Shown here: in pieces, positions 35,259-58,589 of the stretch
How the letters are laid out: each line of letters begins with the position of its first letter
How positions within the stretch are numbered: position 1 is the stretch's first letter
IMG/VR virus record: IMGVR_UViG_3300049001_000044
Span: 124,001-188,000 of that record
Reading direction: 5' to 3' (one strand)
DNA length: 64,000 nucleotides
The notes under the pieces: model-generated
The model's input: only the letters and a program-made list of their open reading frames with translations
What the model was told of the DNA's origin: nothing
The model's database searches: none
Made by a program: the position numbers and the translations under genes

Positions 35259-36827
35259 TTAGAGAATTGAGAAAGGCACAGGATCACCGCCGAAGTGGTC
35301 AAAGTTCGGTTCGGTTTCGTCTGCGTCAGGAGCCATCGTTTCGTACACGAGCTCTCTGGCCTTTTCATCGTAGTGGGAAAGGCGATGCATTAGCTTCATG
35401 ACCACTGCCATTGCCATGATGGTATCGTCAGTCGCGCCGATCTTCGCCTCATACGATCCACCTTTGGCCACGAAGTTCTTCAGTTCGAAGAGTAAGATGT
35501 CGGAGTTGATCTTCAAACCGTTGTTAATTCTCTCAACCAAGTTTTTCATCTGCATGCAGGTGACGAGCTTAGATTTACCGGTCGTGTAGGTACCGAACTT
35601 GCCTGGTGTTTCGTCGTACCGCTCTACGCCATCCAAGTAGGTACCACCGTCTGGGCTATCATCGTTTTGGATCATGGCGACTAGCGCTTCACCCACACCG
35701 TTTCGCTCAAAAGACCACACAACTTCAGCGCGCCGACGATTTTGATCTGGCTTTCTCAGCTCTTTCAACAGCCACTTGATCTTAGCATAGATGAGAGGGA
35801 TGTTGACGTTATTCAGTCTCAGCTCAGCGACTTGTTCCAAGCTTGGGAACTCCACAACCTGAATTGCAGTGAAGTCTTTTCCGTTACCTGTGGCCGGATC
35901 AACGCCGACGAGATAAGTTTTGTTTGCTCCACCGACGTCTTTCCAGAACCTGAAACCCATCTCTTCACGGATGTGCGGCTTAGCACGCATCGCATGCAGG
36001 CAACGTGAGTCAATGAGCAACGCCTCGCTAGAAAGGAATTCGCAGTCAAGTTCTTGGCGGGCCTTAACCGGACCAAGTTTGCCGATCATTTCGTCGTAGT
36101 ACTTTTGCTCCCGGTCTGGGTGCTGATACCACATCGCCCTGATAGGTTTGAAACTGTTTTGACCACTGTTTGCGCCTCGCCACAGCTGCGCGAAGAGGTC
36201 AGAGTCGCCGTTAGGGGTCGAGGTTAGAACGAACTTACCACCAGTCGATAGAGACGGTGCAAGCGATGCCCACATCTCGTCTTGAATACGACGAGATAGG
36301 AACGCGATCTCGTCAATGAAGAGGAAGGATGGCGAGCTACCACGACCTGTCTTTTCCGAAGTTGCTTCGCACTTGATCTTGGCGTTGTTGTCGAACTCGA
36401 TAGAAGTACGTGAGTAGTATTTGCAGCCTGGCTTGATCCACTCTGGCAATTCCTCATACGCAAACTTGATACGAGACATAATTTCGGTTGCGTGAGCCAT
36501 TGCTTTCGACGCAATGATGCAGAGTTTGGGTTCGTCTTTGTTGGCAAAGCAGGTGAGCCAGATAACGTACATCGCAACGACGGTGGTTTTACCCATCTGA
36601 CGTGAGGCAAGAATGATCGTGTCCTTATTGTTGTGGATGGACGTGATCATCTCTTTCTGGTACTCATAGAGGATCATTGGCACGGCGCCCTTTACAGGGT
36701 CAACGACCATGATGTAGTTTTCGATGAAGTAGATTGGGTCGCGCTGACACCGCACGAGCTCTTGGATGAGCTCAGGCGTGTACTCGTTGGTAGAGTTTGG
36801 GCGCTTAATCGCTGGATTAGCGGGCAT
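35259..36827 (-). CDS. terL: Terminase large subunit (T4 gp17-like)
   Basis: ASRQMGKTT, GRG, FIDEIAF, TSTPNG, GVDPATG..DF, FERNGVG, DDTIMA. Confidence 0.96.
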   Translation of the reverse strand: MPANPAIKRPNSTNEYTPELIQELVRCQRDPIYFIENYIMVVDPVKGAVPMILYEYQKEMITSIHNNKDTIILASRQMGKTTVVAMYVIWLTCFANKDEPKLCIIASKAMAHATEIMSRIKFAYEELPEWIKPGCKYYSRTSIEFDNNAKIKCEATSEKTGRGSSPSFLFIDEIAFLSRRIQDEMWASLAPSLSTGGKFVLTSTPNGDSDLFAQLWRGANSGQNSFKPIRAMWYQHPDREQKYYDEMIGKLGPVKARQELDCEFLSSEALLIDSRCLHAMRAKPHIREEMGFRFWKDVGGANKTYLVGVDPATGNGKDFTAIQVVEFPSLEQVAELRLNNVNIPLIYAKIKWLLKELRKPDQNRRRAEVVWSFERNGVGEALVAMIQNDDSPDGGTYLDGVERYDETPGKFGTYTTGKSKLVTCMQMKNLVERINNGLKINSDILLFELKNFVAKGGSYEAKIGATDDTIMAMAVVMKLMHRLSHYDEKARELVYETMAPDADETEPNFDHFGGDPVPFSIL

Positions 36828-36886
36828 GTAGTTCTCCTAAGTTAGATATGCAGGGATAACGTGTGACGTTTTGGAAACCCTGCAGA

Positions 36887-36894
36887 TATTTATT
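36887..36894 (-). promoter_or_regulatory. Late promoter motif AATAAATA upstream of terL
   Basis: Motif match; leader contains a hairpin. Confidence 0.62.
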
Positions 36895-36913
36895 AGGAGA
36901 ACCTGTGCGTCAG

Positions 36914-37372
36914 TTAGTTGTGACCGTAATCGATCTTGCTCTTCAAGATCATTTCAAGAGCCGTATGCAGTTCCATTCCTGACAGATTCTTCTTCAACCA
37001 TTTCGTTGCGAGCTGGTTAGTGAGCTTCTCGTTCTGATATATTTTGCCTGGCGACTTGACCGTCATCCATGCGTGATACGCTTCGTGAGCTGCTTGAGCC
37101 ACATCCGCTGCATCTCGACTTTGAAGATTGATAAGGTAAATGGTTCCCGGGGTATCAGCTGCGGTTAACCCCAGCTCAGCCATCCAATCCTCTACTTTCC
37201 CCTTCAGCGGAGGAGTAAAACCTGGCTCATCGCCCTGTTTAACCATGTATGCGCCGGCCTTCATGTCATCAGTATCGGTCACGACTTTATCCTGGCCCAG
37301 AATATCTTTTACGACATCTAGGGCGGTGAAGCGTGTGGGCGTTCTAGCCTCGAAAAGTTCGTGTAGTTTCAT
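36914..37372 (-). CDS. HExxH-containing protein with MKLHELFE leader
   Basis: AAHEAYHA motif. Confidence 0.7.
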   Translation of the reverse strand: MKLHELFEARTPTRFTALDVVKDILGQDKVVTDTDDMKAGAYMVKQGDEPGFTPPLKGKVEDWMAELGLTAADTPGTIYLINLQSRDAADVAQAAHEAYHAWMTVKSPGKIYQNEKLTNQLATKWLKKNLSGMELHTALEMILKSKIDYGHN

Positions 37373-37400
37373 TTTAGGAGCTCACGTAATTTCATTTTCT

Positions 37401-37673
37401 TTATCCGAATAGTTTGTTGCCGCCCTTCTTGATCCGTAGCTTCTGTGCGGTTTCAAGGTCACGACGGATGGTTGCATATCGAGTGGCTTCCTTCTTGAAG
37501 AAGTCAATTTGGTCCTGTGTGGGAGTGAACCCATCCTCCGTCTGACAACGAGCGACTTCCTGCTTAGCCAAATACTCGATGAAGTCTGAGTAGTGGTTGA
37601 CGCGCTCGTTGCTGACGAAGAAAGCCGTTCTTACCGGCTTTCCACTATCATCATGGATTTTGATCTCGTCCAT
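37401..37673 (-). CDS. Hypothetical protein (90 aa)
   Basis: ORF track; TAATG coupling. Confidence 0.7.
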   Translation of the reverse strand: MDEIKIHDDSGKPVRTAFFVSNERVNHYSDFIEYLAKQEVARCQTEDGFTPTQDQIDFFKKEATRYATIRRDLETAQKLRIKKGGNKLFG

Positions 37674-38329
37674 TACGCTTTGCGTTTGAGGATATCCTTA
37701 TCCTCGTTCTTGATGCGCTGCTCGAGGTCGGTCCAATTCATGCGACCATGATCGTGCTTTTCAATCTCTTCCAACTTAGCACGAACTTCGGCGCCGAGGG
37801 TATCGAAGATTTCGAAGAATGCGTATTTGTAGCGGTTGCCTGCCAACTTGTTGCGCTTCGCCTTCATGCGCTCACGCTTCGTAAAGATGTTCATGAAGAA
37901 CACCGCATCTGGGGCTGAGAGGTTATCGGCGAACTCATGGTCAGAAAGCCTGTCGTCGACTTCTTTATCAGTCATGAGATCATGAGGAATGTCAGATGCG
38001 TTGCCAAAGTCTGCACGACCTGCAGTTGCACCAGTCACAGTGCTCTTACGCTTATCCGGACGAACCCAACCTGGACGACCACCTTCACGGACGACACCTT
38101 CACCCAGCACTTCACCTTCTTCGTCGTCCATGTCATACACACCATACGCGCGGTCTTCGCCTGGGATGTGTGCCCAGAACATGTGCTTACCATCTTCGAC
38201 ACCGCCCTTGAAGCGAATCTTGTCGGCCTTATCAGGGTAGGCCTTCTTCACGGCATCCATCCATTCATCGCGGTCTTTGATTGTCGCCTTTTCACTGACG
38301 ATGTTTTGGAGTTCACGTAGTAGTTTCAT
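37673..38329 (-). CDS. Hypothetical protein (218 aa), probable processed head protein
   Basis: MKLLRELQNIVSE leader and internal VLGE/VVRE sites; GTAAATA motif upstream. Confidence 0.7.
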   Translation of the reverse strand: MKLLRELQNIVSEKATIKDRDEWMDAVKKAYPDKADKIRFKGGVEDGKHMFWAHIPGEDRAYGVYDMDDEEGEVLGEGVVREGGRPGWVRPDKRKSTVTGATAGRADFGNASDIPHDLMTDKEVDDRLSDHEFADNLSAPDAVFFMNIFTKRERMKAKRNKLAGNRYKYAFFEIFDTLGAEVRAKLEEIEKHDHGRMNWTDLEQRIKNEDKDILKRKA

Positions 38330-38372
38330 ATTCTTTCCTAAGATTGTTGCGGCCTATCGGCACATCCCTTAT

Positions 38373-38984
38373 TTACTTCAAGCTCTTGATAAAGGGCTCT
38401 ACCTGATCCATGAAGGTACTTTCGTTTTTGTTGAAGATGTAGAACTTTTCGCACTTGATCATGATTTCGCTGTTCGATTTCAAGCACTCTTGGAAGTGAT
38501 CGTTGTGGAACCATGCAGCGTTGTTCATGTCCTGCATTACCAGCGTGATGGCCTTCTCTGTGGCCACATCATAGTCCTGTTCACCATCGCGATTTCTTAC
38601 AACGTCGCGGTGCATCTCCATGTTGCCGGTCAGATCATGGAAGTCCGGGCTGCACAACCATTCAAACTTACCGATCGGAAAAACCACCCCTAGCTGATCA
38701 CCATAAAGTAGAGCGTTGTTGGCGCTGCCAGAAGTGAAGAGACCGTTGCGGAATGGGAACCCAAATTCCTTCTTGAAGAATTCATTGGCGCGATCATGAA
38801 GATCAGTTGGACTGTCACGAGGGCCAGTGCGCTCACGGAACGGGATGATGGCATGGTCAGGTACGTGCTGCGCTGCATGGTGAAGATACCTATCTCCCTT
38901 CAGAGAGAAGTAGTAGGCGCAGTCCTTCTTGAACTGTTCTAAGTTAAGCGGCGCGGACTCTTGGAGGTATTGCTTGAATCTCAT
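38373..38984 (-). CDS. ART-like protein, subfamily B (first Arg motif degenerate)
   Basis: MRFKQYLQE leader; PRDS...FTSGSANNALLYG...FP.G.F...SEIMI. Confidence 0.6.
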   Translation of the reverse strand: MRFKQYLQESAPLNLEQFKKDCAYYFSLKGDRYLHHAAQHVPDHAIIPFRERTGPRDSPTDLHDRANEFFKKEFGFPFRNGLFTSGSANNALLYGDQLGVVFPIGKFEWLCSPDFHDLTGNMEMHRDVVRNRDGEQDYDVATEKAITLVMQDMNNAAWFHNDHFQECLKSNSEIMIKCEKFYIFNKNESTFMDQVEPFIKSLK

Positions 38985-39700
38985 TTGTACCACCCATCGA
39001 TCTTGTGCTTGATAACGTCCGCATCCATTACATCGGAAAGGTACTTCGATTTCTGGCTGCGAATTTTTTCTGCCATGCGCTTGCCAATCGGGTTAGCGAT
39101 TGGAGCGTCGTAGAAATTGGTCATCGATGCGAACGCCTTTCTAAGCACCGCATCGGTTAGCTCACCCTCGTCATTCTTGATCTCGGCGAAGAATGAGCTG
39201 AATTCCTGCTTAAAGAATTCCTTGTTCTCCGCTGACCGCTTGTAGACTTGCTGAATGAATTCGGGATCCACATCGCGCTCTTGACGAGTTGCTGCGCGCT
39301 TAAGCGCCGTTTCAAGTGGTGTGTCAACGAACACCATGCCTACGTCATAGCCCAGCGACTTCAAAATACCAGCACGCTGAAGGATGTTTTCTGCACTGTT
39401 CGATGTACCATCAATAAGCAGTGGCAGCATACCATTCAGATAGTTGCCCAACATGCCTTTCGTGATGCGATGGGTCTGATCTTGGAATGCAATCCAGTTC
39501 ATGCTGTTGACGCGACGACCAGTCTTGAGTGTGAGGTACTCGGTGGCGATGTCGGTGTTGATGACGCGAGGTTGGATCGCACCACTGATTTTCTTCCCAG
39601 TGTACGACTTACCAGAGCCCGGAATGCCGACGACGAAGACAGCTTTGAAAATTCCGCGATCTTCGATTGATTCTGAAATGAACTCTTTGAATGAAACCAT
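38981..39700 (-). CDS. P-loop kinase (zeta-toxin / AAA_33-like) with head-targeting-like leader
   Basis: MVSFKEFISE; VGIPGSGKS, LLIDGT, ALKRAATRQER. Confidence 0.8.
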   Translation of the reverse strand: MVSFKEFISESIEDRGIFKAVFVVGIPGSGKSYTGKKISGAIQPRVINTDIATEYLTLKTGRRVNSMNWIAFQDQTHRITKGMLGNYLNGMLPLLIDGTSNSAENILQRAGILKSLGYDVGMVFVDTPLETALKRAATRQERDVDPEFIQQVYKRSAENKEFFKQEFSSFFAEIKNDEGELTDAVLRKAFASMTNFYDAPIANPIGKRMAEKIRSQKSKYLSDVMDADVIKHKIDGWYK

Positions 39701-39733
39701 GATGTTCTTTTATGATTGGGATACAGGCTCTAT

Positions 39734-41059
39734 TTACTTCATGTGAGACTGAATGTACTCAAGAGCGTCGTCAGTTAGTTCACCCATATTCAGCGAAGGC
39801 CACCGATGGAAGAAGTCTACGAACGCATTCTCAACCTTCCTGTGAACTGCATGGCCGCCCTGTCGAAGAGCATGAACAACGCCCGCAAATAGACGTGCAT
39901 CGATCGCAACACATGGACCGCTGAACCAACACTCAACATTCGTTGGTAGCTTCCGTCCGAACTCAACCATCTTTAAGTTCAGGGTGTCAGGGTGGAACAT
40001 AACAGCGGCAAGAGCTTGAAGTCCCCTTCCCTTATTCTTGCTGAGGATGTCCATCAATTCTTTCTTCGGCGTTTCTTCAAATGCATCGCACCATCTTTCA
40101 GCGAAATCGTCGGTGTTGCTGTCGATGAAGTCGTTGATAGCACTGACGCTGGCCATAGTCATTTGTTTCCCATCGCCAAGTTCCAGCCCGATATCCTCTA
40201 AGAGGTGCTCGAACTCGTCAGAGAACAAATCGACATCAATACCATCAGACCAAGACGTGACGATATCGTTGTGAATGAAGTCATCCACATTACTCACCAC
40301 CACTTTGGTGCCATCGAATGGAACGATGACCATCGGCATACCATAGCTCGCCGCTTCAGCAATGTTAGAAGAGCAGATAAGTGACTTGCTTCGCGATGGA
40401 AAATCCTTCATGCTATCAGAAATGTCCATCATCAACTGGTAGATGTTGTTCGTATCTCTTGAGGTGCGCTCGCCCTGCGATGCGTCGATCGTCATAACTG
40501 CGACGTCATGCTTGAATCCGCGGAAGAGCAGACCACCAGTCGAAATTGCTTGAAGGCCGCGTGAGCAGTGCTTGTTGAGAAGGTCAACAGCTTTCTTCAC
40601 ATCGACATACTCGACGGCCCATGGCTTGACGACCGCCTCAGTGATTGGCTTTGGCTCGCGCTCCATGATGTCGCCTGTGATCTTCTTGAAGCCATTGCGT
40701 TGGTACCATGCCTTGAGCTGTGTCTTGGTTAGATTCTTCCCCTCCCTTCCGCCTGCGTTCTTAAGCGGCTTAACAGTGAGGTCCATCTTCACCTGATGCT
40801 TGTCAGCCAGGTCGGTCAGCCACTTCATGAACTCACGAGCGTTGCCTTGGTTCTTCTCAATCGACATGATGCTACTGATGTGGATCATGCCTTGCCACTT
40901 GCTAATCTCCGCCATCATTTTGTCCTGCCAGATGGCCATACGTGGACTCCAAGGATGCGGGGTCGTTTGTTCATGATACTCTTTCATGAACGCATCGAGG
41001 CCTGGGTTCGCCTTCAAACTTATGCGAACTACCTCTGATAGGAACTGTTTGAATCTCAT
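39734..41059 (-). CDS. GNAT acetyltransferase fused to an ART-like domain
   Basis: QGNAREFM...LKAWYQRNGF (GNAT); LFRG...FPSRSKSLICSS...A..YG...VECWFSG. Confidence 0.7.
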   Translation of the reverse strand: MRFKQFLSEVVRISLKANPGLDAFMKEYHEQTTPHPWSPRMAIWQDKMMAEISKWQGMIHISSIMSIEKNQGNAREFMKWLTDLADKHQVKMDLTVKPLKNAGGREGKNLTKTQLKAWYQRNGFKKITGDIMEREPKPITEAVVKPWAVEYVDVKKAVDLLNKHCSRGLQAISTGGLLFRGFKHDVAVMTIDASQGERTSRDTNNIYQLMMDISDSMKDFPSRSKSLICSSNIAEAASYGMPMVIVPFDGTKVVVSNVDDFIHNDIVTSWSDGIDVDLFSDEFEHLLEDIGLELGDGKQMTMASVSAINDFIDSNTDDFAERWCDAFEETPKKELMDILSKNKGRGLQALAAVMFHPDTLNLKMVEFGRKLPTNVECWFSGPCVAIDARLFAGVVHALRQGGHAVHRKVENAFVDFFHRWPSLNMGELTDDALEYIQSHMK

Positions 41060-41529
41060 TTGATCTCTTTCGTCTGCGAGTCGATGGTGATCATCTTCAA
41101 GATGTCGTTACGGTCGGCGACGACGATGTTGTTGGTCGTCTTACCACCATTCGCGTAAGGAATGAACTGGTTAACCTTCTTTCTTTCCACCTTGATCTTC
41201 GCCTTCGAGGTAGCAGCGGCGAGTGCGATGTTTAGATAGGTAGCAGCGACCTCAGCGTTACGTGCGGCGTAGCGAGGCTCGATAATCTCGGTGTAGGCGA
41301 TCTGATTCTGGAAAGTGCTAATTGCGGAGTTGTACACCTCGTCAATCTTCTTCTCAGTCTCAATGTCATCCGCGTCCTTCACGTCTGGCTGCGGCTCAGT
41401 AGGTTGAACGTTGCTAGGTTGGGTGACATCAGTCATTCCATACTCTTGCTCAATATCGAACTCAACACCGCTCGTTGGGTTGAATGAACCTTCTTCGATG
41501 TTGAAGACGTCTTCTAGTGGGTGTTTCAT
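41056..41529 (-). CDS. Probable terminase small subunit (gp16-like)
   Basis: Helical core, EVAATYL, C-terminal TTNNIVVADRNDILKMI. Confidence 0.55.
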   Translation of the reverse strand: MKHPLEDVFNIEEGSFNPTSGVEFDIEQEYGMTDVTQPSNVQPTEPQPDVKDADDIETEKKIDEVYNSAISTFQNQIAYTEIIEPRYAARNAEVAATYLNIALAAATSKAKIKVERKKVNQFIPYANGGKTTNNIVVADRNDILKMITIDSQTKEIK

Positions 41530-41540
41530 TTTCTGCTCTC

Positions 41541-42797
41541 TTATTCAAATGGCCATGGGCCCGGTTTTTCGCCGGTTTTTCTCTGTGCTTGGAACTTGGC
41601 GATCTTTTTCTTGATCATTTCCTTGGTGTTCCACAGATCGAAATTTCCTGCTGCGTATCTTGCGAACAGCGCCATGATCTTTTCAAAGGTCTCGTCGCCA
41701 CGTTTGTTGGACATAACCAACTTGTAGTACTTCTTTCGATACTCTTCAACCTCAGCCTTGTTGTCGATGGCCAATGCATATGCTTGCGCGCATCTAGATA
41801 CGGCGTTGATGACCTTGTCTTCCATGGACAGATAGTCACTACCAACGGATCTAAACTCGACGTGACTGCGCTTTAGATTGACTGAGACGTATTTACCCAG
41901 ATCGCGTCTTGATTGTAGCTGGTCAGCGGCGATTCGAGTCACGCCATTACGCATCAACCTCAGTTGCTTCTCAACGAACTCTGGATCGCGGCTAAGTGCG
42001 TCCTTCATGTTCCGGTACATTGACTCGCAGTACCTATTCGTCTCACGACCAAATTCAGCAAGTAGGTGTTCGTCACCCAGGAACAGCACCAGCTTTACCA
42101 TGTCAAGTTTGTTATGACCTTCGCCACTCACGTTAATGTGGAGCCCGCATGACGCGTTCGTCTCTGCGCCATTCTCTTTTAACCACGCGAAGACGTTCTT
42201 CAGAGCAGTTAATCCTTCGCTGATTGAGCTGTAAACAGGGCTAACCATCTCAATGCCAAAGTTGGCCTTTATGCTGTCGTCAGGTTCAAACGTCCACTTG
42301 GTCGATACCTTCGTCGCTTCGTTGTGCTCACCGAAAACAGTTGGCTCTTCTACGTTTAGGTCTTTTGCGAACTTAGCCGCAATCGCTTTAGCAGTGTTGA
42401 TGAACTCAAGGTAGGGGTCATCTGACGCTTCATCGTAACCGTGGGGCAGATCGTACCCGTAAACCTCAGCAAAGTCAGAGAATGAGAAGATGGATTTGCT
42501 GGTCATGTAGGATAAGAAGGTGGTACTAATCTGACCGCGGCTTCCCGCAAGGGATTTCCATCTTTGATAGTCATCATCTAACTTATCGAAGGCGTCATCG
42601 GACATGCTGAAGAAGTTAGCGATGACGTTTGGTGTAATGTCGTAATCAAAGCGCACACCCTTTTTACCAGTGAGTTTCTCAACGTCATCGAAGAATACTT
42701 CCAGTTCGAATCCCACTTGTAGAGGAGATGATGATGCGAAGCTCTTGAGCGCGCTAGGGCTCATCCTAACCTCGTTAAGATAATCTTTGAATTTCAT
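41541..42797 (-). CDS. Putative amidoligase (COOH-NH2 ligase type 2) with head-targeting-like leader
   Basis: GFELE, PDDSI, GIEMVSP, TNASCGLHINVS, KYVSVN, VEFR. Confidence 0.83.
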   Translation of the reverse strand: MKFKDYLNEVRMSPSALKSFASSSPLQVGFELEVFFDDVEKLTGKKGVRFDYDITPNVIANFFSMSDDAFDKLDDDYQRWKSLAGSRGQISTTFLSYMTSKSIFSFSDFAEVYGYDLPHGYDEASDDPYLEFINTAKAIAAKFAKDLNVEEPTVFGEHNEATKVSTKWTFEPDDSIKANFGIEMVSPVYSSISEGLTALKNVFAWLKENGAETNASCGLHINVSGEGHNKLDMVKLVLFLGDEHLLAEFGRETNRYCESMYRNMKDALSRDPEFVEKQLRLMRNGVTRIAADQLQSRRDLGKYVSVNLKRSHVEFRSVGSDYLSMEDKVINAVSRCAQAYALAIDNKAEVEEYRKKYYKLVMSNKRGDETFEKIMALFARYAAGNFDLWNTKEMIKKKIAKFQAQRKTGEKPGPWPFE

Positions 42798-43321
42798 TTC
42801 TTCGCGCCTCTTGTAGTACCGGTAGTCTTTCTAGTACCTGCTGGTTTTTTCGCCTGTTTCGCCTGTTTCTTTGGACCCTGCTTGAAGAGGGACTGTTCAG
42901 TGATGACGCGGAACTTCATGCCGTTCTGACGACAGAAGACCTCAGCGGCTTTCCACTTGGCGATATTTACTGCCAGCGCCATCTTGTCACGATCGCTCTT
43001 TGCCTTTTCAGCCAGCGTCTCTTTCAACGGCTTGACTTCCAACACTTCTTTCTGAATGTTGCCGTCCTTATCCTGATAGACCACGACGAAGTCAGGGAAG
43101 TATCTGGCCGGTTTGAAGCCTGGACGTCCAGTCACAGGGTCAATGACCGGTTTGAGATAAGGAATGACAAGCTCTTCACTACCCCACTTGATGACAGCCT
43201 GTGAACTATCCAGGAACTTCATCATAGCAATTTCCCACGATGAACGGAACATGATGTTCGTTGCATCACCTGCGTATTTCTGCGGATTCTTTGGAACGAA
43301 TCTTCCTTGTGCGAAACCCAT
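42794..43321 (-). CDS. Head completion nuclease (T4 gp4-like)
   Basis: GRFVPKNPQKY, RSSWE, WGSEELVIPY, YFPDF, EVKP. Confidence 0.9.
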   Translation of the reverse strand: MGFAQGRFVPKNPQKYAGDATNIMFRSSWEIAMMKFLDSSQAVIKWGSEELVIPYLKPVIDPVTGRPGFKPARYFPDFVVVYQDKDGNIQKEVLEVKPLKETLAEKAKSDRDKMALAVNIAKWKAAEVFCRQNGMKFRVITEQSLFKQGPKKQAKQAKKPAGTRKTTGTTRGAKK

Positions 43322-44484
43322 TATGCGTATTCTCCATCGTCGCTAGACTCTTGACTTGCCAGCGATTCGACCACGCTTGGTGAGGTGGTGTTGTCAGCTA
43401 AGAAGTTCGTCGATGGTCGAGCGAATGATTGATTTGTTTTTCCTAGTGGATTGACTTTGTTTCCAACCACTGTGTCCTGTACAGAAGATGCACCACCGTC
43501 TGAGATGGTAGTGAAGTTAGGAGTCGCGTAGTCGCGGTACCCCTGATTCAGTGCGCTACCATTTGCGCCACCTTGTGCAGAGCTCCCACCATTACCGTCC
43601 ATCGGAATATCGCCGCCCATAAACAGTGGACCGCCTGTCTCAGTGGTGAAGGCGTTGACGTGATCCATGAAGACAGAGTCGAAGTCAACTGACATCGTGA
43701 TGATGTTGAAGTTGCCGCCGTTCTCATGGTCCATATCGTCGATATCGATGTTGGTGAACTTTGGGTTCATGAAGATGAAGTTCACAACCTTCACCCACGC
43801 CGAAGGAGTCTTTACGTCGCTGTTCCTCTCAACGAAGATTTGGTGGACGGTCATTTCTTCCAAGATGTTCTTCGCATCATTTGGGAGTGGTCCACGCCAT
43901 GCGGTGTTGTTGTCGCTGCCATAATCGAAGCCATAGTCTTCATGCGTCATCGAAGGCATGAACTGTCTGCGAGAGATCGGTTGAATGAGCTGACGGTACA
44001 TGTTGACGAAGCCCAATCCATTATTGCCAACGTCGTCGAAGAATGTCAAGCTAACTTCTCGGTTGCGGATGGACTTCAACACCTTAGTGCGGAAGTTGTA
44101 GAGGTTTACTTCCTCATAGTCGAAGTCGTGTTTAGGACGATCAACGTGGCGAACGATGAAAGTGAGATTCTCTTGGAGCTGCTTCACCGGATAACCCATC
44201 GACTCGGCGTAGGCGATGATAGCTGGGTTGAACTTGAAGCTCACCTTGAACATGAACTTCAGCTTAGGATTGAATGCTACGTTGTTCTTGATCAGATCAT
44301 GAGCGTAGTCAGACGAAATCCATTCCGAAGGAGCGCCTTCTGATTGTGATGCGGTGGATGCTTTGGAGGTCGAGCCAAAAGACATCTTCTTGTCTTGCCC
44401 GCTAACAGCGGCGCCGAATTTGTCAAGCGCGTTCTTCTCCAAATTGACACCCGATGGGATCATTTTTGAAATATCTTTTGGCAC
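43321..44484 (-). CDS. Tail-tube-like baseplate protein (gp48/gp54-like)
   Basis: VDRPK...VNLYNFR...VSLTFFDD tube-fold pattern; late promoter; beside tail tube gene. Confidence 0.55.
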   Translation of the reverse strand: MPKDISKMIPSGVNLEKNALDKFGAAVSGQDKKMSFGSTSKASTASQSEGAPSEWISSDYAHDLIKNNVAFNPKLKFMFKVSFKFNPAIIAYAESMGYPVKQLQENLTFIVRHVDRPKHDFDYEEVNLYNFRTKVLKSIRNREVSLTFFDDVGNNGLGFVNMYRQLIQPISRRQFMPSMTHEDYGFDYGSDNNTAWRGPLPNDAKNILEEMTVHQIFVERNSDVKTPSAWVKVVNFIFMNPKFTNIDIDDMDHENGGNFNIITMSVDFDSVFMDHVNAFTTETGGPLFMGGDIPMDGNGGSSAQGGANGSALNQGYRDYATPNFTTISDGGASSVQDTVVGNKVNPLGKTNQSFARPSTNFLADNTTSPSVVESLASQESSDDGEYA

Positions 44485-44511
44485 GATTATTGTCCAGGTG
44501 GTTGTACGGTT

Positions 44512-44519
44512 TATTTATG
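44512..44519 (-). promoter_or_regulatory. Late promoter motif CATAAATA
   Basis: Directly after a UUCG terminator. Confidence 0.65.
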
Positions 44520-44535
44520 AAGCCGGACGGCGCGC

Positions 44536-44561: not shown

Positions 44562-44579
44562 ACGTTCAGCTAGCTTGTA

Positions 44580-44837: not shown

Positions 44838-44838
44838 A

Positions 44839-47168: not shown

Positions 47169-47189
47169 TATGTGCTCCATGCGATGGGG

Positions 47190-51579: not shown

Positions 51580-53438
51580 ATTGTTTTCTTCCCAATGCTT
51601 TGCTTGGTGGAGGAGTTTAGAATCTGATGCATGGTCGGTTTAGCCGAAGTGTACTCAGTGCGACGATCTTGCTCAATGAAGATCCAACGGTTCTTCACAG
51701 CGCTGAAGCGGTGCAGTCGTGGAGCAATCTTCGTATCAGTTGGATAGTAGAGACGGAAGTATTCACCATCCTTCGACTTCGTTGGGTCAGGGAGTTGGTA
51801 GCCTTCGACGTACGGTTCACCATTCTTTGGTAGACCATCTTCGACATAGGTAGGCGCCCTTGCTTTCATCTTCACTGGCGCTGGTTGACCCTTCGCGTTT
51901 CCAGTAGGAACAGGCGGAGTCATGTGCACCATTTCAATGCTCAGTCCATCATCTGATCCGCGTTCAGGAACCGCTTTCGCTGCCGCCTTCATCGTCTCTT
52001 CGGTTACTTCCAACACAGACTCATCAATGTGACCAGCACCATCAGCAAGGATCGTGTCAGCGGTGAGATACTTCTGAGTGTCGAACGTGCCGAAGATGTC
52101 TCTCGTTTCTTGCGACGGGATTGCCTCTTGAGCTTGGAAGCGGTAGAGCACTGGCTTCCATCCAGTTGTGTAGCCAACAGACGCCCATCCAGTGTCGGTA
52201 ACTTCCAAGAACTTCTTCACAGGACGAAGGTTATGATCGTACTGCATTTCAGGAATGACCTCGATGATGTCACCGGTAACGATAGGGCGACCCATCAGTT
52301 GGACCATCACGGCATATGATACAGTGAACGAGTACTGATCGAGAATGTTCAGACCGAATTTTGACAGATCGGAGATACTGTCGTTCGTGCTATACTGCGC
52401 CTTGATTCGCAGTGGCTGCTTCGCGTAGTCACGGTCCCTGTTCTCTTGGAAGAACAAGTCTTGCACGTTATTGATGTCAGTTGGTGGGCTATCAAGAATG
52501 TCCAGCTCAAGCACTTCCCAGCTATCGGTTCCAGTGAACATCGTTGGTACGACACGAATCGCTTTCACCAACAACTCCGTCTGTAAATTCATCGTGACAG
52601 GAGATACAGACTGGACTAGGTTGAACACGCCCACTCGCTTCCAAACGTAGTTGATTGGGAAGCTAAACATGTCGCCTGTCATAAAGTCCACACCGCCACC
52701 AATCAACGTGAAGTTGACGATTGTGGAGACAAACTGTGAATTTACCGTTGCGACGCCAAGTTGCTTCATAGCACCCACGACCGGCTTCCACATAACTTGG
52801 AAGGACGTTGAGTTGATTGCCACGAGCGTCACTACGCCTGCGACCGGGTTCTGTCCTATTGCTGTTGGTGTGAGCGTGCCATTGCCAAGACCACTGAAAG
52901 TAACCTCACCAAATTCTACCTTACCATCTGCGATCTCAACTCTAACTTGCTTCGCAAAATTGAAGGCAGTGTTACCTTGCTTGATGACGACGGCGCCCAC
53001 CTTTACCCAGTTAGGTTTTGCAGGGCTATTTTCTGGCTCGTTGCCAGGCCGAGCAGTGACGATACCAAAGTCAACACCTACATAGGCTTTTCCTGCTACG
53101 TCACTACCTGCTTGGAAGCTTCGCCATGCACCGTTGTTGATGTTGGAAATTGGGAAGCCAGGTGCTGGGGTCGATGACATCAGCGTGCCTTTAGACAGCA
53201 CACTACCATCACCTTGCTCATGCACACCTAGCAGCTTGTAGATGTTGAGTGGGGCACCATTGATGTTGAGATTCTCTGCAGCGTAGGACTCCTGCAGCGC
53301 TGTTTCATTGCGAGCGCAGAGGTCTTCCTCACCAGAGATTTCCCACTCGCCCATACAAGGATTAGTGGGAACGTACGAAGGTGTATCGTCGTGTTGGGTG
53401 TTTAGGCTACCAGCCGCGTCTTCGCAAGGGTAAGTCAT
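51576..53438 (-). CDS. Neck protein (gp14-like) with large inserted domains
   Basis: N-terminal AENLNINGAPLNIYKLLG; DLFFQENRDRDY, LSKFGL, GDII, FLEVTD. Confidence 0.6.
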   Translation of the reverse strand: MTYPCEDAAGSLNTQHDDTPSYVPTNPCMGEWEISGEEDLCARNETALQESYAAENLNINGAPLNIYKLLGVHEQGDGSVLSKGTLMSSTPAPGFPISNINNGAWRSFQAGSDVAGKAYVGVDFGIVTARPGNEPENSPAKPNWVKVGAVVIKQGNTAFNFAKQVRVEIADGKVEFGEVTFSGLGNGTLTPTAIGQNPVAGVVTLVAINSTSFQVMWKPVVGAMKQLGVATVNSQFVSTIVNFTLIGGGVDFMTGDMFSFPINYVWKRVGVFNLVQSVSPVTMNLQTELLVKAIRVVPTMFTGTDSWEVLELDILDSPPTDINNVQDLFFQENRDRDYAKQPLRIKAQYSTNDSISDLSKFGLNILDQYSFTVSYAVMVQLMGRPIVTGDIIEVIPEMQYDHNLRPVKKFLEVTDTGWASVGYTTGWKPVLYRFQAQEAIPSQETRDIFGTFDTQKYLTADTILADGAGHIDESVLEVTEETMKAAAKAVPERGSDDGLSIEMVHMTPPVPTGNAKGQPAPVKMKARAPTYVEDGLPKNGEPYVEGYQLPDPTKSKDGEYFRLYYPTDTKIAPRLHRFSAVKNRWIFIEQDRRTEYTSAKPTMHQILNSSTKQSIGKKTI

Positions 53439-54277
53439 TTGTATTGCTCTAGGAATTCTTTGAATACGTCTTCACGAATGAAGAGCGCTTTACCTTCTAT
53501 CCAAGCTTCAACGCCTGGCTTCTCAGGGACGGTTGCTTTTGCAGCGATTGCCGTCGTGAGGTTATTTATCGAAGGATCAAGACAGTACTCCAGCAATTCT
53601 TCAAAGTTCGAAAACCCTTTCTTCGCCATCGTGCGAACTGCTGCTTCAATTGACACCACGTCCTGGTGACTGATTTTGACCTTGCCCGCATCGGCCTTCT
53701 CGACTAAGTCGTAAAGCATCTTCATCGTCCATCCACGAAGAGTGCCACGAATTGCTTCAGCGTCGGTGTCAGGGACGATTCCACGGTTAATCAGCTTCAT
53801 CAAGCTCATTAGGAGGCCATTGAGGGAGTTTAGTCCTGGCAAGCCAATCGATTCCTCCAGCACTGGGAATGATTTCCAGATATCGTGCGAGTTGCACTTA
53901 CCAACCTTCGCGTCATCAGCTGGGATCACGTAGAAGATGTCGCCATATCCAGACGCAATGCGATCGGTCGACGCACAAATGTAGGCGCTCTCACGGCTAG
54001 GATATGCTTCCCATTTCTTAGAAGTGGCGATGAACTTCGTGTAGTAGTTGTGAGTGTTCTTACTCACACGTTTGAAGGAGGTGGAGTCACCCAATTGGTA
54101 CTCGCCCTTGGTGCCGTCGACACCGCGCACCAAGTTTAGCTTACCATCTTTTACCCTCTTCATAACCTTAGACGCATTCGCTTTAACCCACTCCACTGCC
54201 TCATTGTAGCTGACAGCTTTTGATGATGGGACTTTTGGAAGAGCAACCTCTTCCATGATGTAGTCTTTAAACCGCAT
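53435..54277 (-). CDS. ART-like protein, subfamily A, tandem copy 6
   Basis: MRFKDYIME; LVRG...YPSRESAYICAS...YG...IPADD...VEAWIEG. Confidence 0.68.
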   Translation of the reverse strand: MRFKDYIMEEVALPKVPSSKAVSYNEAVEWVKANASKVMKRVKDGKLNLVRGVDGTKGEYQLGDSTSFKRVSKNTHNYYTKFIATSKKWEAYPSRESAYICASTDRIASGYGDIFYVIPADDAKVGKCNSHDIWKSFPVLEESIGLPGLNSLNGLLMSLMKLINRGIVPDTDAEAIRGTLRGWTMKMLYDLVEKADAGKVKISHQDVVSIEAAVRTMAKKGFSNFEELLEYCLDPSINNLTTAIAAKATVPEKPGVEAWIEGKALFIREDVFKEFLEQYK

Positions 54278-55109
54278 AGAGTTCTTCTTTCAATTGGTTG
54301 ATTAGTTTATGGGTGTGCGAACCCATGCGATCACTTTCGATGCGGATAAACACGCACTCACCGCGAATCCAAATTTCTCTAGCCTCGTTCACGCCACCGT
54401 AATCACTCGCATCAGTGTGTAAAAACTTGTTCAGGGTAGGGTCGAAAATTCGTTCGAAGAAGGCCTGAAGATCAGAGTCCTTCTTACCCCTCATGTTAAC
54501 GATGACGGCGCGAATCGTGTCTGCTTCATAATCCTGCAAAGTTCCTACCATTTCCCGTAACATGTCGGCAGTAATTTCGCTTAGCTCATTCCTGAACTGG
54601 TCAATGTTGTCAGGGTCCAGCTTGTACTTGTGGTTGGAGAGCAGTCTCACCCATCCAAAGAACTGGTTCAGATCACCAATGTCAGGGAACCCAGTGCCGC
54701 GAAGACCCTCTCTAAAGCTGTACCAGAAATCACCGTCAGGACAAATACCCATGTGTGCGTTGTCGGATGGAATGACGAGGAAGGCCTTACCATACTGCCA
54801 CGCAGTCTGCTCAAACGATGAGCAGATCCATGCTTGATCGCGACGGGGATAATCGCTCCAACGTGGTGATGAAGAGACGAGAGCGTTCGTCTCATTCGAA
54901 GTGAAGGCGGCCTTACGTTTGAACTTGCTGCTGTCGCCGACAGCATAGTCCTGTTGCAGTGGCATGCCACGGAAGATTGCGACGTCAGGATTATCGAATA
55001 GGGCGTTAGTGTACCACTTCGAGTTCTTCCTAATCCAATCGTACGCTTCCTCTTTCGAGATGGCGGTGGATTGAGGTCCACCCTCAGCAAGGTATGCTTT
55101 GAATCTCAC
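54267..55109 (-). CDS. ART-like protein, subfamily A, tandem copy 5
   Basis: MRFKAYLAE; IFRG...YPRRDQAWICSS...YG...DFW...REIWIRG. Confidence 0.68.
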   Translation of the reverse strand: MRFKAYLAEGGPQSTAISKEEAYDWIRKNSKWYTNALFDNPDVAIFRGMPLQQDYAVGDSSKFKRKAAFTSNETNALVSSSPRWSDYPRRDQAWICSSFEQTAWQYGKAFLVIPSDNAHMGICPDGDFWYSFREGLRGTGFPDIGDLNQFFGWVRLLSNHKYKLDPDNIDQFRNELSEITADMLREMVGTLQDYEADTIRAVIVNMRGKKDSDLQAFFERIFDPTLNKFLHTDASDYGGVNEAREIWIRGECVFIRIESDRMGSHTHKLINQLKEELYAV

Positions 55110-55969
55110 AGCTCCAACTCCTTACGCAGGAATTCGATGATGTCGCGATCGCTGTTGCCAGTGACCTTGATGAACGCGGCTTTACCGTTGATCCATACTT
55201 CTCGTCTGCTGTCGACGCCACGATAGTCTTCGCCCTTTGTGTGGATGAATCCATTTGCATTTGGATCGAGTGCTTTTTCCAACCATTCGTCCATGTTGTC
55301 AGCGTGCATTTTCTTCATCGACTCTACAAGAGGTCTAACAATGCGAATGTCTTGCATCGACTCCTTCAACTCTTGCTCGTTATACTTGCTGAGCGAGTGA
55401 CGAAGCTTTGTAGGATTATTCTCTGGCATCGGAGTGGAAGGGGTGTTGAGCTTGTCAATGAATCGATTAACGTCATCGACGTCAAAGAAGCCAGACCCTT
55501 TCAAACCTACCTTGTCAAAGCATGCCCAGAAGTCATACGATGGACAGACACCGATTCGTGCTGTGTCCGCAGGAATGACAAAGTACAGACTACCTTCTGC
55601 ATCAGGATCCTTTGAACTATACCCACGAAATGCATAGAGGTCTGCGCCCGACAGGGAGGTGGAGCAGATGTACGCGCTCTCACGTGGTGGGAACGACTGC
55701 CATTCAGGATAGGTTGGGATGAGCGAGTGAATGTGATTGCTGGTGTTTGCGGCTCTCCTTCTGAAGAGGCGTGAATCACCGATAGCAAAGTCATCAAAGG
55801 AATCACGCATGCCGCGATAGATTCGATTGTTGGTTTTGCTATCATCCAAAATGCTGTGGATTCCTTCCGCTGCATTCTTTTGAATCCAATCTACTATCTC
55901 TGCTGCGTGAGACGTAACGGTGAATGGCTTACGGTATTCTTGCTCTTGTAGGTATGACTTAAACCGCAT
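55106..55969 (-). CDS. ART-like protein, subfamily A, tandem copy 4
   Basis: MRFKSYLQE; IYRG...FPPRESAYICST...DFW...REVWING. Confidence 0.68.
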   Translation of the reverse strand: MRFKSYLQEQEYRKPFTVTSHAAEIVDWIQKNAAEGIHSILDDSKTNNRIYRGMRDSFDDFAIGDSRLFRRRAANTSNHIHSLIPTYPEWQSFPPRESAYICSTSLSGADLYAFRGYSSKDPDAEGSLYFVIPADTARIGVCPSYDFWACFDKVGLKGSGFFDVDDVNRFIDKLNTPSTPMPENNPTKLRHSLSKYNEQELKESMQDIRIVRPLVESMKKMHADNMDEWLEKALDPNANGFIHTKGEDYRGVDSRREVWINGKAAFIKVTGNSDRDIIEFLRKELEL

Positions 55970-56792
55970 CTTTCAAAGTCCTGATAATTTTTTCGATGTT
56001 GTGACCGTCGACCTTGATGAATGCGGCTCTACCTGCAACCCACACTTCACGATCACCAGTACGTTTGTGATAATTAGACGCCGTGGTCTGTGAGAACTTA
56101 TTTAGCTCGGGGCCAAGGACGATCTCAAGCAGGTCGTCCATGTTATCGACATCCAGATTATTCATCGCATCAACGACGGCAGTGTGGTAGACTTTCTTCA
56201 TCACATCCTTCGTCCATGATCGAAGCACATCATGCAGCTTCTCTGAATCGGTCTCAGGAAGATGGACATTCAGAGTTTCAGCGGTGGTGGTGAGGAAGGT
56301 GTTCAGGTCTGCAACGTCATTGATGTTCCAAAGGTCAGCATGAGCTAGACCTCTTTCGAACGATGGCCAGAAGTCATCACGTGGGCAGATGCCGATGTGG
56401 GCGTTATCTGCTGGGATGACTAGGAATGGATCGTAGCGTGATGAGTATTTAGCAGCAGTGTGCAAGTTGTCGGCGCAGATGTATGCGCTCTCACGACTAG
56501 GATAGTTCTTCCATCGTGGCGAAGTGGCAATGAATGAGTTGACGAAGTTTTTGGTGTTAGCCGACTTCCTCTTGAACATAGCCGAGTTACCCACTGCATA
56601 TTGAGTATCAGACGGCACGCCTCTCACGATGTAGTTGTCAGCACTTAACACATTCGTGATGTAGTGGGAGGCATGACGCTTGCACCACTCCCTAAATGGG
56701 CCGATAGGGATAGGAGCGATGACTGGTTTGTCGCTCATCCCGGCTCCTAGCACGTGGAAGTCCGACTCATTAATGAATTGCTTAAAGCGCAT
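55959..56792 (-). CDS. ART-like protein, subfamily A, tandem copy 3
   Basis: MRFKQFINE; IVRG...YPSRESAYICAD...DFW...REVWVAG. Confidence 0.68.
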   Translation of the reverse strand: MRFKQFINESDFHVLGAGMSDKPVIAPIPIGPFREWCKRHASHYITNVLSADNYIVRGVPSDTQYAVGNSAMFKRKSANTKNFVNSFIATSPRWKNYPSRESAYICADNLHTAAKYSSRYDPFLVIPADNAHIGICPRDDFWPSFERGLAHADLWNINDVADLNTFLTTTAETLNVHLPETDSEKLHDVLRSWTKDVMKKVYHTAVVDAMNNLDVDNMDDLLEIVLGPELNKFSQTTASNYHKRTGDREVWVAGRAAFIKVDGHNIEKIIRTLKDAV

Positions 56793-57687
56793 TCAGCCAC
56801 TCCCTTACTTTTTTCTCTGCTGATTCGTAATCATATTCGTCGACAAATTCACTGATCGAGATGAACGCACATGTGCCGCCAATCCATACTTCATGATCAC
56901 CTTCCACATGGAAGGTCTCGCCCTTAGTGTGAGTGAAACCAGAAGCGGCTGGATCCAGTAGGCCTTCTAAGAACGTTAGCATGGACTCACGATAGTCCAT
57001 CTTCTCGGCGATCATCTTAATCCTTCTACTGTACTCGTTATGGAAGTCGACATGAATCTTGTCCGACATGTCATGAAAGTCTTTGTTAGTATCAGGGTGA
57101 TCACCAATCATGTCTTCCAAGTCTTCACGCCAAATGCTTCTCAAAATCCTGGTAAGTTCTGCGTAGTCAGTGCTGTTGTCAATTGGTTCACCAAATCGTT
57201 GGCATATGGCGCTCAAGACTTCGTTCATCATCTCAACACCGCCACCTTTGAACATTTTATCGAACTCTTTGAAGCCGCACCAGAAGTCGAAAGCTGGAAC
57301 AACGCCAATTCCCGCATCGTCAGCAGGAATTACCAGGTAGGGGTCACCAAAGTTGTTCGCGTTATCTAGGTCAGTAGTGCATATGTAGGCGCTCTCACGC
57401 TTAGGATAGTCTTTCCATTTAGAAGAGCGGGAAACCAACAAGTTGATGAAGTTGGAAGTGTTTGCCGCCTTTCGAACGAATTTGCTCGTATCGCCTAGAC
57501 CGTATGGGTGATCTTCCCTACCCATTGAAAGACCACGCCAAATAATTGGACCACCACGAAGCAGACCAGCAACATGCGCCTTGCTATGCTGCTTAATCCA
57601 CTCAACCACTTCTTCCTTTGATGTTGGAGAAGCATGCGGGTAGCTGTACTTCTCCTCTTGTTCCTTTAGGTAATCTTTGAATCTCAT
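56782..57687 (-). CDS. ART-like protein, subfamily A, tandem copy 2
   Basis: MRFKDYLKE; IWRG...YPKRESAYICTT...FG...DFW...HEVWIGG. Confidence 0.68.
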   Translation of the reverse strand: MRFKDYLKEQEEKYSYPHASPTSKEEVVEWIKQHSKAHVAGLLRGGPIIWRGLSMGREDHPYGLGDTSKFVRKAANTSNFINLLVSRSSKWKDYPKRESAYICTTDLDNANNFGDPYLVIPADDAGIGVVPAFDFWCGFKEFDKMFKGGGVEMMNEVLSAICQRFGEPIDNSTDYAELTRILRSIWREDLEDMIGDHPDTNKDFHDMSDKIHVDFHNEYSRRIKMIAEKMDYRESMLTFLEGLLDPAASGFTHTKGETFHVEGDHEVWIGGTCAFISISEFVDEYDYESAEKKVREWLNAL

Positions 57688-58589
57688 TCTAACTCTTCTA
57701 CCCAGTCAAGTGGGTTATCGGCGTGGCCGATAACTGCTACCTCACCATGCACCCACACCTCATGGTCTCCATGAATGTCGAACTCTCTTCCATTTAAGAC
57801 TTGGAATTTGTTCGTGTATGGATCCATCGACTTGGACAGCCATTCATACAGGCTGTCTCCCATGTTCGGGCTCTGCAGGATGGTTTCACGGATGATTTTC
57901 GCCCAACGCTGGTTGTAATCGCGGGTGTGGTCAGGATGGTCGTTGTCGAACCCTTCCAACTGATTTACGAAATCGTGAAGCTTCTCGGTGGTCACATCGC
58001 TCAACACCCTTCTCATCTCGTCAAAGGTCATCTTCTGCTCATCTAACTTCAGATTCATTTCTTCTTTGATGAACTCCAGCATCGTGTTGATGGAGTCGAC
58101 GTTCTTGTGTCTGCGCTTTAGGAACGAAAAGCTGTCCCAAAAATCTGACTCAGTGCAGATTCCGATTTGCGCGCTGTCGGCAGGAATGATTAGTGCAAGG
58201 TCACCATACTGTTCCGCCTTGTGCTCGTTCGTCGTGCAGATGTATGAAGACGAACGAGGTGGGAACCGCTTCCATGCTGCGTCATTGCTCACCAACAAGT
58301 TGATGTAATTGGCAGTATAGGCTGCACGACGCTTGAGCGATCTCGAATCACCAATCAAGTACGGTGCCTCTGCCGTGAATCCACGATAGATCGGTGATGC
58401 GCTGCCATCCTTCAGCTTCTGAATGTAGCGAGAGGCGTTCTTCTTAATCCACTCCTTAACCTCATGCTCTTCGACCCGCCGCATGTTTTGAAAGTTTGGG
58501 GTGGAGATCGTCTCCTCATCGTCGTCCCATGGAAAAGTCGGTTCACCGTTGTTTCGATATTGCTCTTTGATGTAGTCTTTGAATCTCAT
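57684..58589 (-). CDS. ART-like protein, subfamily A, tandem copy 1
   Basis: MRFKDYIKE; IYRG...FPPRSSSYICTT...YG...DFW...HEVWVHG. Confidence 0.68.
   Translation of the reverse strand: MRFKDYIKEQYRNNGEPTFPWDDDEETISTPNFQNMRRVEEHEVKEWIKKNASRYIQKLKDGSASPIYRGFTAEAPYLIGDSRSLKRRAAYTANYINLLVSNDAAWKRFPPRSSSYICTTNEHKAEQYGDLALIIPADSAQIGICTESDFWDSFSFLKRRHKNVDSINTMLEFIKEEMNLKLDEQKMTFDEMRRVLSDVTTEKLHDFVNQLEGFDNDHPDHTRDYNQRWAKIIRETILQSPNMGDSLYEWLSKSMDPYTNKFQVLNGREFDIHGDHEVWVHGEVAVIGHADNPLDWVEELE

Follow-up and report, generated by a model that had tools for sequence, protein, structure and literature searches.

The question raised by positions 39,734 to 41,059 of the DNA analysed here is whether a single phage gene encodes one protein or the precursor of two enzymes. 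The DNA is a stretch of 64,000 nucleotides (the window) corresponding to positions 124001-188000 of the IMG/VR virus record IMGVR_UViG_3300049001_000044 (G000; 343,229 bp with direct terminal repeats), the genome of a T4-like jumbo phage of 343 kb. The open reading frame (ORF) in question, P0001 (39734..41059, minus strand), encodes 441 amino acids (aa; 49.9 kDa) and comprises a leader, a GNAT domain, a joint and a domain resembling ADP-ribosyltransferases (ARTs). The initial annotation had read it in the same order, as leader, GNAT domain, linker and subfamily A domain, and had taken it for a polyprotein cut in the prohead into an acetyltransferase and an ADP-ribosyltransferase, or for a bifunctional modifier. 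The order of the parts was directly confirmed by the single 441-aa ORF, its homologues and its paralogues.

In our proposal, two effector enzymes would be made as a single precursor, P0001, expressed late together with the structural genes. Its N-terminal leader, MRFKQFLSE (residues 1-9; 41033..41059, minus strand), resembles the capsid-targeting sequence (CTS) of phage T4 and would bring the precursor into the prohead core, where a gp21-family prohead protease would cut after L7-S8-E9. The same protease would probably also cut at the joint, after I139-T140-E141, giving a basic GNAT of 15.3 kDa (residues 10-141, isoelectric point (pI) 9.7) and an acidic ART-like enzyme of 33.4 kDa (residues 142-441, pI 5.0). 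Retained in the head, the two enzymes would be carried into the cell along with the DNA and would modify host targets at an early stage of infection. The whole chain, from packaged precursor to two injected enzymes, was given a probability of about one half.

The predicted internal site at the joint, I139-T140-E141 (40637..40645, minus strand), lies in the sequence EPKP-ITE-AVVKPW and would be cut before A142. The fit of ITE to the (I/L)xE rule, on which the initial annotation had relied, did not stand as a bare motif, whereas its position proved to be homologous to an invariant leader end. In the family alignment, the Glu column at the joint was Glu in 66 of 66 sequences, with Leu in 54, Ile in 8 and Val in 3 at P3 (Ile or Leu in 62 of 65) and mostly Ala at P1'. 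The same Glu is the last leader residue of the single-domain members, in which the domain starts directly after it (...FLxE/AxxKPW, with the slash marking the cut position here and below), and hmmsearch with the family profile aligned ITE to profile positions 9-11, the leader end. Two further two-domain homologues, P0003 and P0004, which come from two further assemblies and are 63% identical to P0001, have LTE at the joint. An assembly frameshift or other artefact was ruled out as the source of the fusion because three independent assemblies carry it.

The origin of the joint was seen by comparison with the syntenic contig L001, in which the order is a TnsA-like gene, a gene of 156 aa, a GNAT gene of 142 aa, an ART-like gene of 281 aa and a Zeta kinase gene, with TerL further on. 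The GNAT and ART-like genes of L001 are separate, overlap by 14 nt and lie in different frames. At the joint, the window is a net 16 nt shorter than L001, which fuses the frames, and the window has ATC ACT GAG where L001 has TTG GTT GAG, the last three leader codons. On the basis of the split genes of L001 and this correspondence between joint and leader end, the sequences indicate that the fusion is derived from split genes and that the joint is a relic of the leader of the second gene. A small deletion (net 16 nt) would have joined two adjacent, overlapping leader-bearing genes. As the remnant of a leader, the joint would thus have kept its protease site, and it is plausible that ITE is such a retained site.

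Evidence on processing came from relatives of this phage. The closest isolates by TerL are Ralstonia phage RsoM2USA (43%) and Agrobacterium phage Atu_ph07 (39.5%), followed by the Xanthomonas phages XacN1 and Xoo-sp13. Positions 39484-52173 of Atu_ph07 (L004) encode 13 tandem paralogues, gp53-gp65 (a numbering that the source name FDI40_gp063 confirms), which carry the leader M[RK]WxQL[TN]E and have all been found in virions by electrospray ionisation tandem mass spectrometry (PMC6102473, Table S5). One of them, gp63 (41.4 kDa), has the order leader, GNAT, GSITE/TAE and ART-like domain, and its top gel slice was that of proteins of 26-31 kDa; the predicted pieces are 28.0 kDa (C-terminal piece) and 12.4 kDa. 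For gp53 (87 kDa), which consists of an ART-like domain, a kinase and two more segments with VTE, LTE, LNE and ITE at the joints, the top slice was at about 21 kDa, and the kinase piece is predicted to be 23.2 kDa. In contrast, gp54 (56.5 kDa), with two ART-like domains and a joint lacking [IL]xE, is not expected to give pieces, and its top slice was at about 56 kDa. The gel positions of gp53 and gp63 imply processing, a point that the authors of PMC6102473 leave undiscussed.

Sequence conservation in other relatives was consistent with these gel positions. The orthologues of gp63 (70-85% identity) keep (I/L)TE and vary at P1'-P3', and a two-domain relative of 570 aa has HKLTE/A at its joint. 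The metagenomic polyvalent relative P0174 (2645 aa) contains ten [LIV]xE/S sites against 2.4 ± 1.5 in shuffled sequences (0 of 2000 shuffles reached ten); there is one behind its own leader, one ahead of each of its five ART-like copies and one separating the GNAT from the ART-like copy that comes next. P0001, gp63 and P0174 share the pairing of GNAT and ART-like domains, which P0021, P0084 and P0113 have in reversed order; this recurrence suggests that the two act on related targets. The RsoM2USA paper does not mention the paralogues, and its virion mass spectrometry covered major bands only. We found no paper describing, for these phages, either the leader or the sites at the joints, in a search that did not extend to the supplements of two broad Aravind-group surveys.

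The competing explanation that survives best, itself unlikely, is that P0001 is packaged and loses only its leader, so that ITE is a harmless leader relic and the product is an intact bifunctional GNAT/ART-like modifier of about 49 kDa. Several observations weigh on this side and against the two-enzyme precursor. P0001 contains five [IL]xE sites, while its shuffles contained 3.5 ± 1.7, so that the bare motif is at the level expected by chance for a protein of this composition. Residues 143-151, directly after the joint, were modelled as strands packed on the domain, as they were in the single-domain members. The full-size gp54 is itself a two-domain protein, and P0084 and P0113, in which the ART-like domain precedes the GNAT, have no clean [IL]xE at the joint. 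Conservation of the site in fusions of the P0001 type is weak evidence because only three sequences are known, at 63% identity. The Atu_ph07 data have the resolution of gel slices, with proteins smeared over many of them; gp63 is a distant relative whose ART-like domain belongs to a different subfamily; and the present phage is known from sequence alone, through an uncultured IMG/VR record. Against an uncut protein, the gp54 joint lacks [IL]xE, whereas gp53 and gp63, which have it, run at fragment size. In addition, the site in P0001 stands exactly at the inferred cut position of every single-domain paralogue, and gp63 orthologues conserve (I/L)TE despite changing flanks. Taken together, these points somewhat favour internal cleavage of P0001 at the joint. 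As for the polyprotein claim of the initial annotation, the two domains, the leader-end homology of ITE, the gp21-family protease and the fragment size of gp63 speak for it, and its weak part is the ART.

The C-terminal domain (residues 142-441; 39737..40636, minus strand), termed ART-like subfamily A, was modelled from 66 sequences with a predicted local distance difference test score (pLDDT) of 94 and a predicted template modelling score of 0.90. The model has a beta core with a helical insert around residues 276-360 and ends in a tail of helices at the C-terminus. Six tandem single-domain genes (53435..58589, minus strand), each with an MRFK..xE leader, are paralogues of residues 152-386 (BLASTP E values of 1e-13 to 9e-5). 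A second ART-like subfamily (phrog_11975/15932), distinct from these six genes, was found at 38373-38993, 45532-46392 and 46389-47180 on the minus strand; for the first of these ORFs (206 aa), the start may instead be an internal MRFKQYLQE, three codons past the listed GTG. The C-domain family comprises 5056 related clusters at 50% identity (E up to 0.001), and neither the ART-like family nor phrog_11975/12810 has an annotated function. The close structural kin of the domain are viral proteins that lack annotation, several Atu_ph07 paralogues (E about 1e-13) among them.

Comparison of the model with solved structures pointed weakly to the ART fold. Twelve of the top-50 PDB matches span the beta core (model residues ~12/37-250), and 10 of the 12 are known ART-fold proteins, all of them weak matches. 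The core-spanning Z scores were 5.5 for Arr, 4.8 for BC2332, 4.7 for KptA, 4.5 for diphtheria toxin (DT), 4.0 and 3.9 for tankyrase, 3.7 for both Tpt1 and AvrPphF ORF2, 3.5 for PARP1, 3.4 for TreX and 3.3 for PARP4. A second structural comparison gave Tpt1, TccC3, OspC3, ExoS and CopC at Z 2.3-4.1 (Tpt1, 4.1), and the structure-atlas clusters matched were ART-PolyVal (template modelling (TM) score 0.49), the Tpt1 cluster, DUF2441 (TM score 0.47) and DRAT. DUF2441/BC2332 is presumably a member of the ART clan, which would make BC2332 the eleventh ART-fold protein among the 12 core-spanning matches. Candidate catalytic residues were located in the R-S/T-E order; in the R-S-E clade of ARTs, the Arg is on strand 1, the Ser/Thr (STS) at strand 2 and the catalytic Glu on strand 5. 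R180 (FRG; 40520..40522, minus strand), on predicted strand 1, is invariant in the 66 sequences, and [YF]RG also occurs in the Atu_ph07 and RsoM2USA paralogues. The segment S226-L-I-C229-S230 (40370..40384, minus strand) is a candidate STS-like strand 2 (strand at model residues 88-91), in which S226, I228 and C229 are nearly invariant and several relatives have ICSTS. E376 (ECWFSG; 39932..39934, minus strand), the candidate catalytic Glu at the start of a late core strand, is invariant or nearly so, and distant paralogues have E[VI][WM] there. As judged from linear order and predicted strands only, the R-S/T-E order and strand placement extend to the second subfamily and to the paralogues of Atu_ph07 and RsoM2USA.

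These resemblances have to be set against a rather improbable alternative, that the domain is not an ADP-ribosyltransferase and is instead an ART-fold-like or similar alpha/beta domain with another role; it might, for instance, have NADase or phosphotransferase chemistry, act on another class of substrates or be an internal head protein with no enzyme activity. The structural scores are low: every ART match is under the confidence guide of the tools (Z below 8, here at most 5.5; TM score at most 0.49), and Foldseek against the PDB gave nothing at E ≤0.001, the best match being CopC/OspC3 at E 0.08. None of the 66 family members matched a Pfam ART family (E up to 0.05); PF18760 and PF03496 did not match P0001, and PF03496 (ADPrib_exo_Tox) had no match anywhere in the genome. 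In hhalign, the family profile reached E 0.1 with T4 Alt, where only a helix plus an L[YF]R segment of both proteins was paired, and E 0.085 with the ART-PolyVal-like ORF of the genome, neither of which is significant. The P0001 sequence had no meaningful match among PDB chains, and the family profile found no ART among PDB sequences, only two engineered proteins on the C-terminal helices. The [QE]xE motif is not present (two positions ahead of E376, the members have N, D, E, S, G, R or K), the strongest motif of the family, RTSRDTNNxYQ, is not a known ART motif, and the best structural neighbours, Arr and Tpt1/KptA, are not protein-modifying ARTs. Nevertheless, ART-fold proteins dominate the core-spanning matches and recur across three independent libraries; the invariant Arg, Ser/Thr and Glu lie in R-S-E order on predicted strands in both subfamilies and in distant phages; and the strongly conserved polar residues argue for an enzyme. 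The model thus makes an ART-like fold probable, and ADP-ribosyl transfer with NAD+ is an activity that we infer from it. Of the ADP-ribosyltransferase named in the initial annotation, the fold resemblance stood at low scores only, while Pfam and the [QE]xE motif gave it no backing. Elsewhere in the genome, outside the window, a 189-aa ORF (G000:207632-208201, minus strand) scored 27.6 bits with ART-PolyVal (PF18760), just below the cut-off, and is the only PF18760-like ORF of the genome; it starts with MKVKELFEE, a leader variant like the T4 Alt N-terminus MELITELFDE.

The N-terminal domain (about residues 19-136; 40652..41005, minus strand) was modelled by AlphaFold from an alignment of 11 sequences (pLDDT 80) and showed the mixed alpha/beta fold of a minimal GNAT acetyltransferase. 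Foldseek placed AcrVA5 on top (probability 1.0) and returned GNATs only (probabilities 0.9-1.0). Consistent with this result, VIA-align, which is independent of Foldseek, gave AcrVA5 at Z 9.3 (91 of 95 residues) and RimI at 8.5, and 50 of its 50 top matches were GNATs with Z ≥7. The root-mean-square deviation from AcrVA5 (PDB 6IUF) was 3.2 Å at 18% identity. A motif A-like loop for acetyl-CoA, K69-N-Q-G72-N-A74 (40838..40855, minus strand), connects strand 58-66 to helix 73-87 in the model; the [QR]-x-x-G-x-[GA] form of motif A, which binds the pyrophosphate of acetyl-CoA, is thus present in the loop joining strand 4 and helix 3, except that K replaces Q/R. Downstream of it is a motif B-like W118-Y119...G123-F124. 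K69, G72, W118, Y119, G123 and F124 are invariant in the 11 N-domain homologues. A point against the assignment is that Pfam GNAT models matched neither P0001 (E up to 0.1) nor the 11 homologues (E up to 1); a relative of the P0021 type had weak Acetyltransf_1/_7 matches, which came from its own C-terminal GNAT. The domain is confidently assigned to the GNATs by modelled fold and motifs, not by a curated sequence model, which upholds the initial annotation here; it would use acetyl-CoA.

Packaging of P0001 is likely. In T4, the internal proteins lose the CTS, MKTYQEFIAE, by cleavage, and any protein fused to this sequence is brought into the capsid (PMC8442874). The leader of the C-domain family is 8-12 aa long in 61 of 66 members, most often 10 aa (MxTFKxFLxE), and agrees with the T4 CTS in length and at the M, T, aromatic, F, I/L and E positions. 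In the window, at least 11 ORFs of the minus strand begin with MRFK[DQ][FY][IL]xE, and in the genome about 14 do. With variants (8-10 aa), the leader-bearing minus-strand ORFs of the window, dispersed through the structural module, include those at 36914-37372, 38373-38993, 38981-39700, 41541-42797, 45532-46392 and 51058-51579, as well as the six tandem paralogues of the C-domain at 53435-54277, 54267-55109, 55106-55969, 55959-56792, 56782-57687 and 57684-58589. Because the leader looks like the T4 capsid-targeting sequence, this gene set may consist entirely of head-packaged proteins.

The genome also has the genes of a T4-type head. A gp21-family prohead protease (PF03420, 84.7 bits against a cut-off of 27) is encoded at G000:224554-225216 (minus strand), and a gp23-type capsid protein (PF07068, 312 bits) at G000:220823-222061 (minus strand), with a gp24-like paralogue. 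The capsid protein carries LKE/TAE about 22 residues before its conserved MIRRIIP core, a position that we take to be that of the gp23 cut site of T4. A 290-aa ORF of this head module, outside the window (G000:222062-222934, minus strand), may encode a scaffold.

It is very improbable that P0001 is a non-packaged protein that acts late in the cytoplasm, with a leader serving another purpose, such as the context of translation initiation or localisation within infected cells. In favour of such a purpose, the leader is known by resemblance only; nevertheless, it is like the T4 CTS in length and key residues, 13 homologues are present in Atu_ph07 virions, the genome encodes a gp21-type protease, and the gene is part of the late cluster for structure and packaging, where start and stop codons overlap.

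The start codon bears on whether P0001 has a leader at all. A public gene call (P0002) and an ESM Atlas record start at M41, which drops the leader and the first GNAT elements. M1 is better supported on sequence grounds because the leader is kept in P0003 and in stand-alone GNAT homologues, and because the start overlaps the stop codon of an upstream weak TerS-like ORF as ATGA. Translation from M41, which would give a truncated GNAT plus the C-domain and has a GGAG 9 nt upstream of its ATG, is highly improbable, as P0003 and eight stand-alone GNAT homologues (135-186 aa) with the same leader show conservation of residues 1-40, and residues 19-44 form a GNAT helix and strands in the fold model.

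Among known systems, P0001 resembles IPI, IPII and IPIII, the T4 internal proteins, with their protease gp21. In both, a leader of about 10 aa ends in (I/L)xE (here MRFKQFLSE, in T4 MKTYQEFIAE), a gp21-family protease and a gp23-type capsid gene are present, the genes lie in late clusters, and homologues occur in virions. In contrast to the small basic proteins of T4, the cargo here is enzyme-like (GNAT, ART-like, Zeta-type kinase and amidoligase), there are about 14 leader-bearing genes and a second, internal copy of the site at the domain joint, and cleavage is predicted. T4 Alt, a head-packaged and injected R-S-E ADP-ribosyltransferase, is likewise an enzyme of a T4-like phage with an R...S...E-type order, and its N-terminus MELITELFDE resembles the MKVxELFE leader variant of the family; packaging of P0001 is predicted. 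Alt differs in its length of 682 aa, with the ART domain at the C-terminus, as well as in the [QE]xE motif and the sequence dissimilarity noted above.

Polyvalent proteins, described by Iyer, Burroughs, Anand, de Souza and Aravind in 2017, join unrelated effector domains in one polypeptide that is predicted to be packaged and injected; ART is their commonest modifying domain, and one GNAT family typically adjoins an ART (PMC5512222). P0001 similarly joins a GNAT and an ART-like domain in a packaging context, and relatives of its C-domain occur in the 2645-aa P0174. However, the polyvalent ART (ART-PolyVal, PF18760) has an H-Y-D active site, whereas the candidates in P0001 are R-S/T-E. Autoprocessing by embedded metallopeptidases was proposed for polyvalent proteins (PMC5512222), whereas the joints here carry sites of the prohead-protease type. 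P0001 has only two domains and, by Pfam, no hallmark polyvalent partner (MuF, zincin metallopeptidase, ART-PolyVal H-Y-D, SNF2, methylase and others). In its proposed mode of action, the locus resembles the T4 CTS/gp21 internal-protein system carrying cargo of the polyvalent-protein type.

For the GNAT, the closest solved structure is that of AcrVA5, an anti-CRISPR protein of phages, which as a GNAT acetylates Cas12a. With about 90-130 aa, both belong to the minimal phage GNATs; they differ in that there is no significant sequence similarity and that strand 5 and helix 4 of the P0001 domain are separated by an additional conserved loop, P98..N101-A-G103..G107. To our knowledge, AcrVA5 is not known to be packaged. 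A close counterpart of the whole ORF is Atu_ph07 gp63 (phrog_11975), a virion protein by mass spectrometry with the same order of leader, GNAT, (I)TE joint and ART-like domain; phrog_11975 matches P0001 residues 58-256 collinearly. The C-domain of gp63, however, belongs to the subfamily of window ORFs 38373, 45532 and 46389, and the two GNATs are 27% identical over 66 aa. The two fusions may be independent events.

Head-packaged, injected enzymes are the first strike of a phage on host transcription and defence, and few have been characterised beyond those of T4 (Alt and the internal proteins). The locus links the T4 capsid-targeting and cleavage signal, the theme of polyvalent proteins and a huge unannotated family of virion proteins, and suggests a rule by which fused effectors are separated by the prohead protease cutting at leader relics. 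Tentatively, such leader-derived sites could be a general punctuation of the injected effectors of T4-like jumbo phages, whose cargo would include a large unannotated ART-fold clade of the R-S/T-E type (NAD+-using) that recurs beside AcrVA5-like GNATs. If so, effector domains could be encoded freely as separate leader-bearing genes or as fusions, from the two domains seen here up to 2645 aa, because the protease would restore single domains inside the head. The injected effectors of jumbo-phage genomes could then be listed from the genome text by leader plus junction sites. The minimal AcrVA5-like GNAT and the divergent ART-like enzyme are candidates for host takeover or anti-defence, and the leader could act as a packaging tag for engineering these phages, like the T4 CTS.

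P0001 sits inside a densely packed minus-strand run of late genes, between the TerS-like gene and TerL and the genes for head completion and tail. The members of the run include a tail sheath protein, a gp15-like sheath stabiliser, gp19-like tube proteins, a gp4-type head-completion protein, the weak TerS-like ORF and, farther off, TerL. The next gene downstream (38981..39700, minus strand) encodes a P-loop kinase of the Zeta-toxin/AAA_33 type (Pfam AAA_33, 1.3e-11; Zeta_toxin, 4.4e-10) with the leader MVSFKEFISE. By BLASTP it matches residues 243-464 of Atu_ph07 gp53, in which the kinase is fused to an ART-like domain, and phrog_12810 covers both P0001 and this kinase gene. A leader-bearing Amidoligase_2 protein (Pfam) is encoded at 41541-42797 (minus strand); in the syntenic contig L001, no amidoligase gene lies between the TnsA-like gene and the 156-aa gene. 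Plus-strand ORFs of up to 80 aa that overlap P0001 were without support and were regarded as shadows.

No near-identical DNA was found in the phage collection. The T4 late promoter TATAAATA occurred at a single site in the 64 kb, away from the gene and with no above-chance signal; sigma-70-like promoters and terminators were not enriched; and Rfam detected no RNA family over 36000-44000. The sole convincing terminator-like site near the cluster is a strong hairpin, rich in GC and with a run of T behind it, at 44544-44561 (minus strand), between the tube-like genes 44839-45429 and 43321-44484 (387 aa). The gp4-type head-completion protein (42794-43321, minus strand) scored as a Tn7 TnsA-like endonuclease N-terminal domain (PF08722, 1e-21). 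The tail sheath protein (47262-49121, minus strand) and a 620-aa virion structural protein (51576-53438, minus strand) have a stretch of about 130 aa in common (27% identity, E 3e-5), which may be a decoration or insertion domain.

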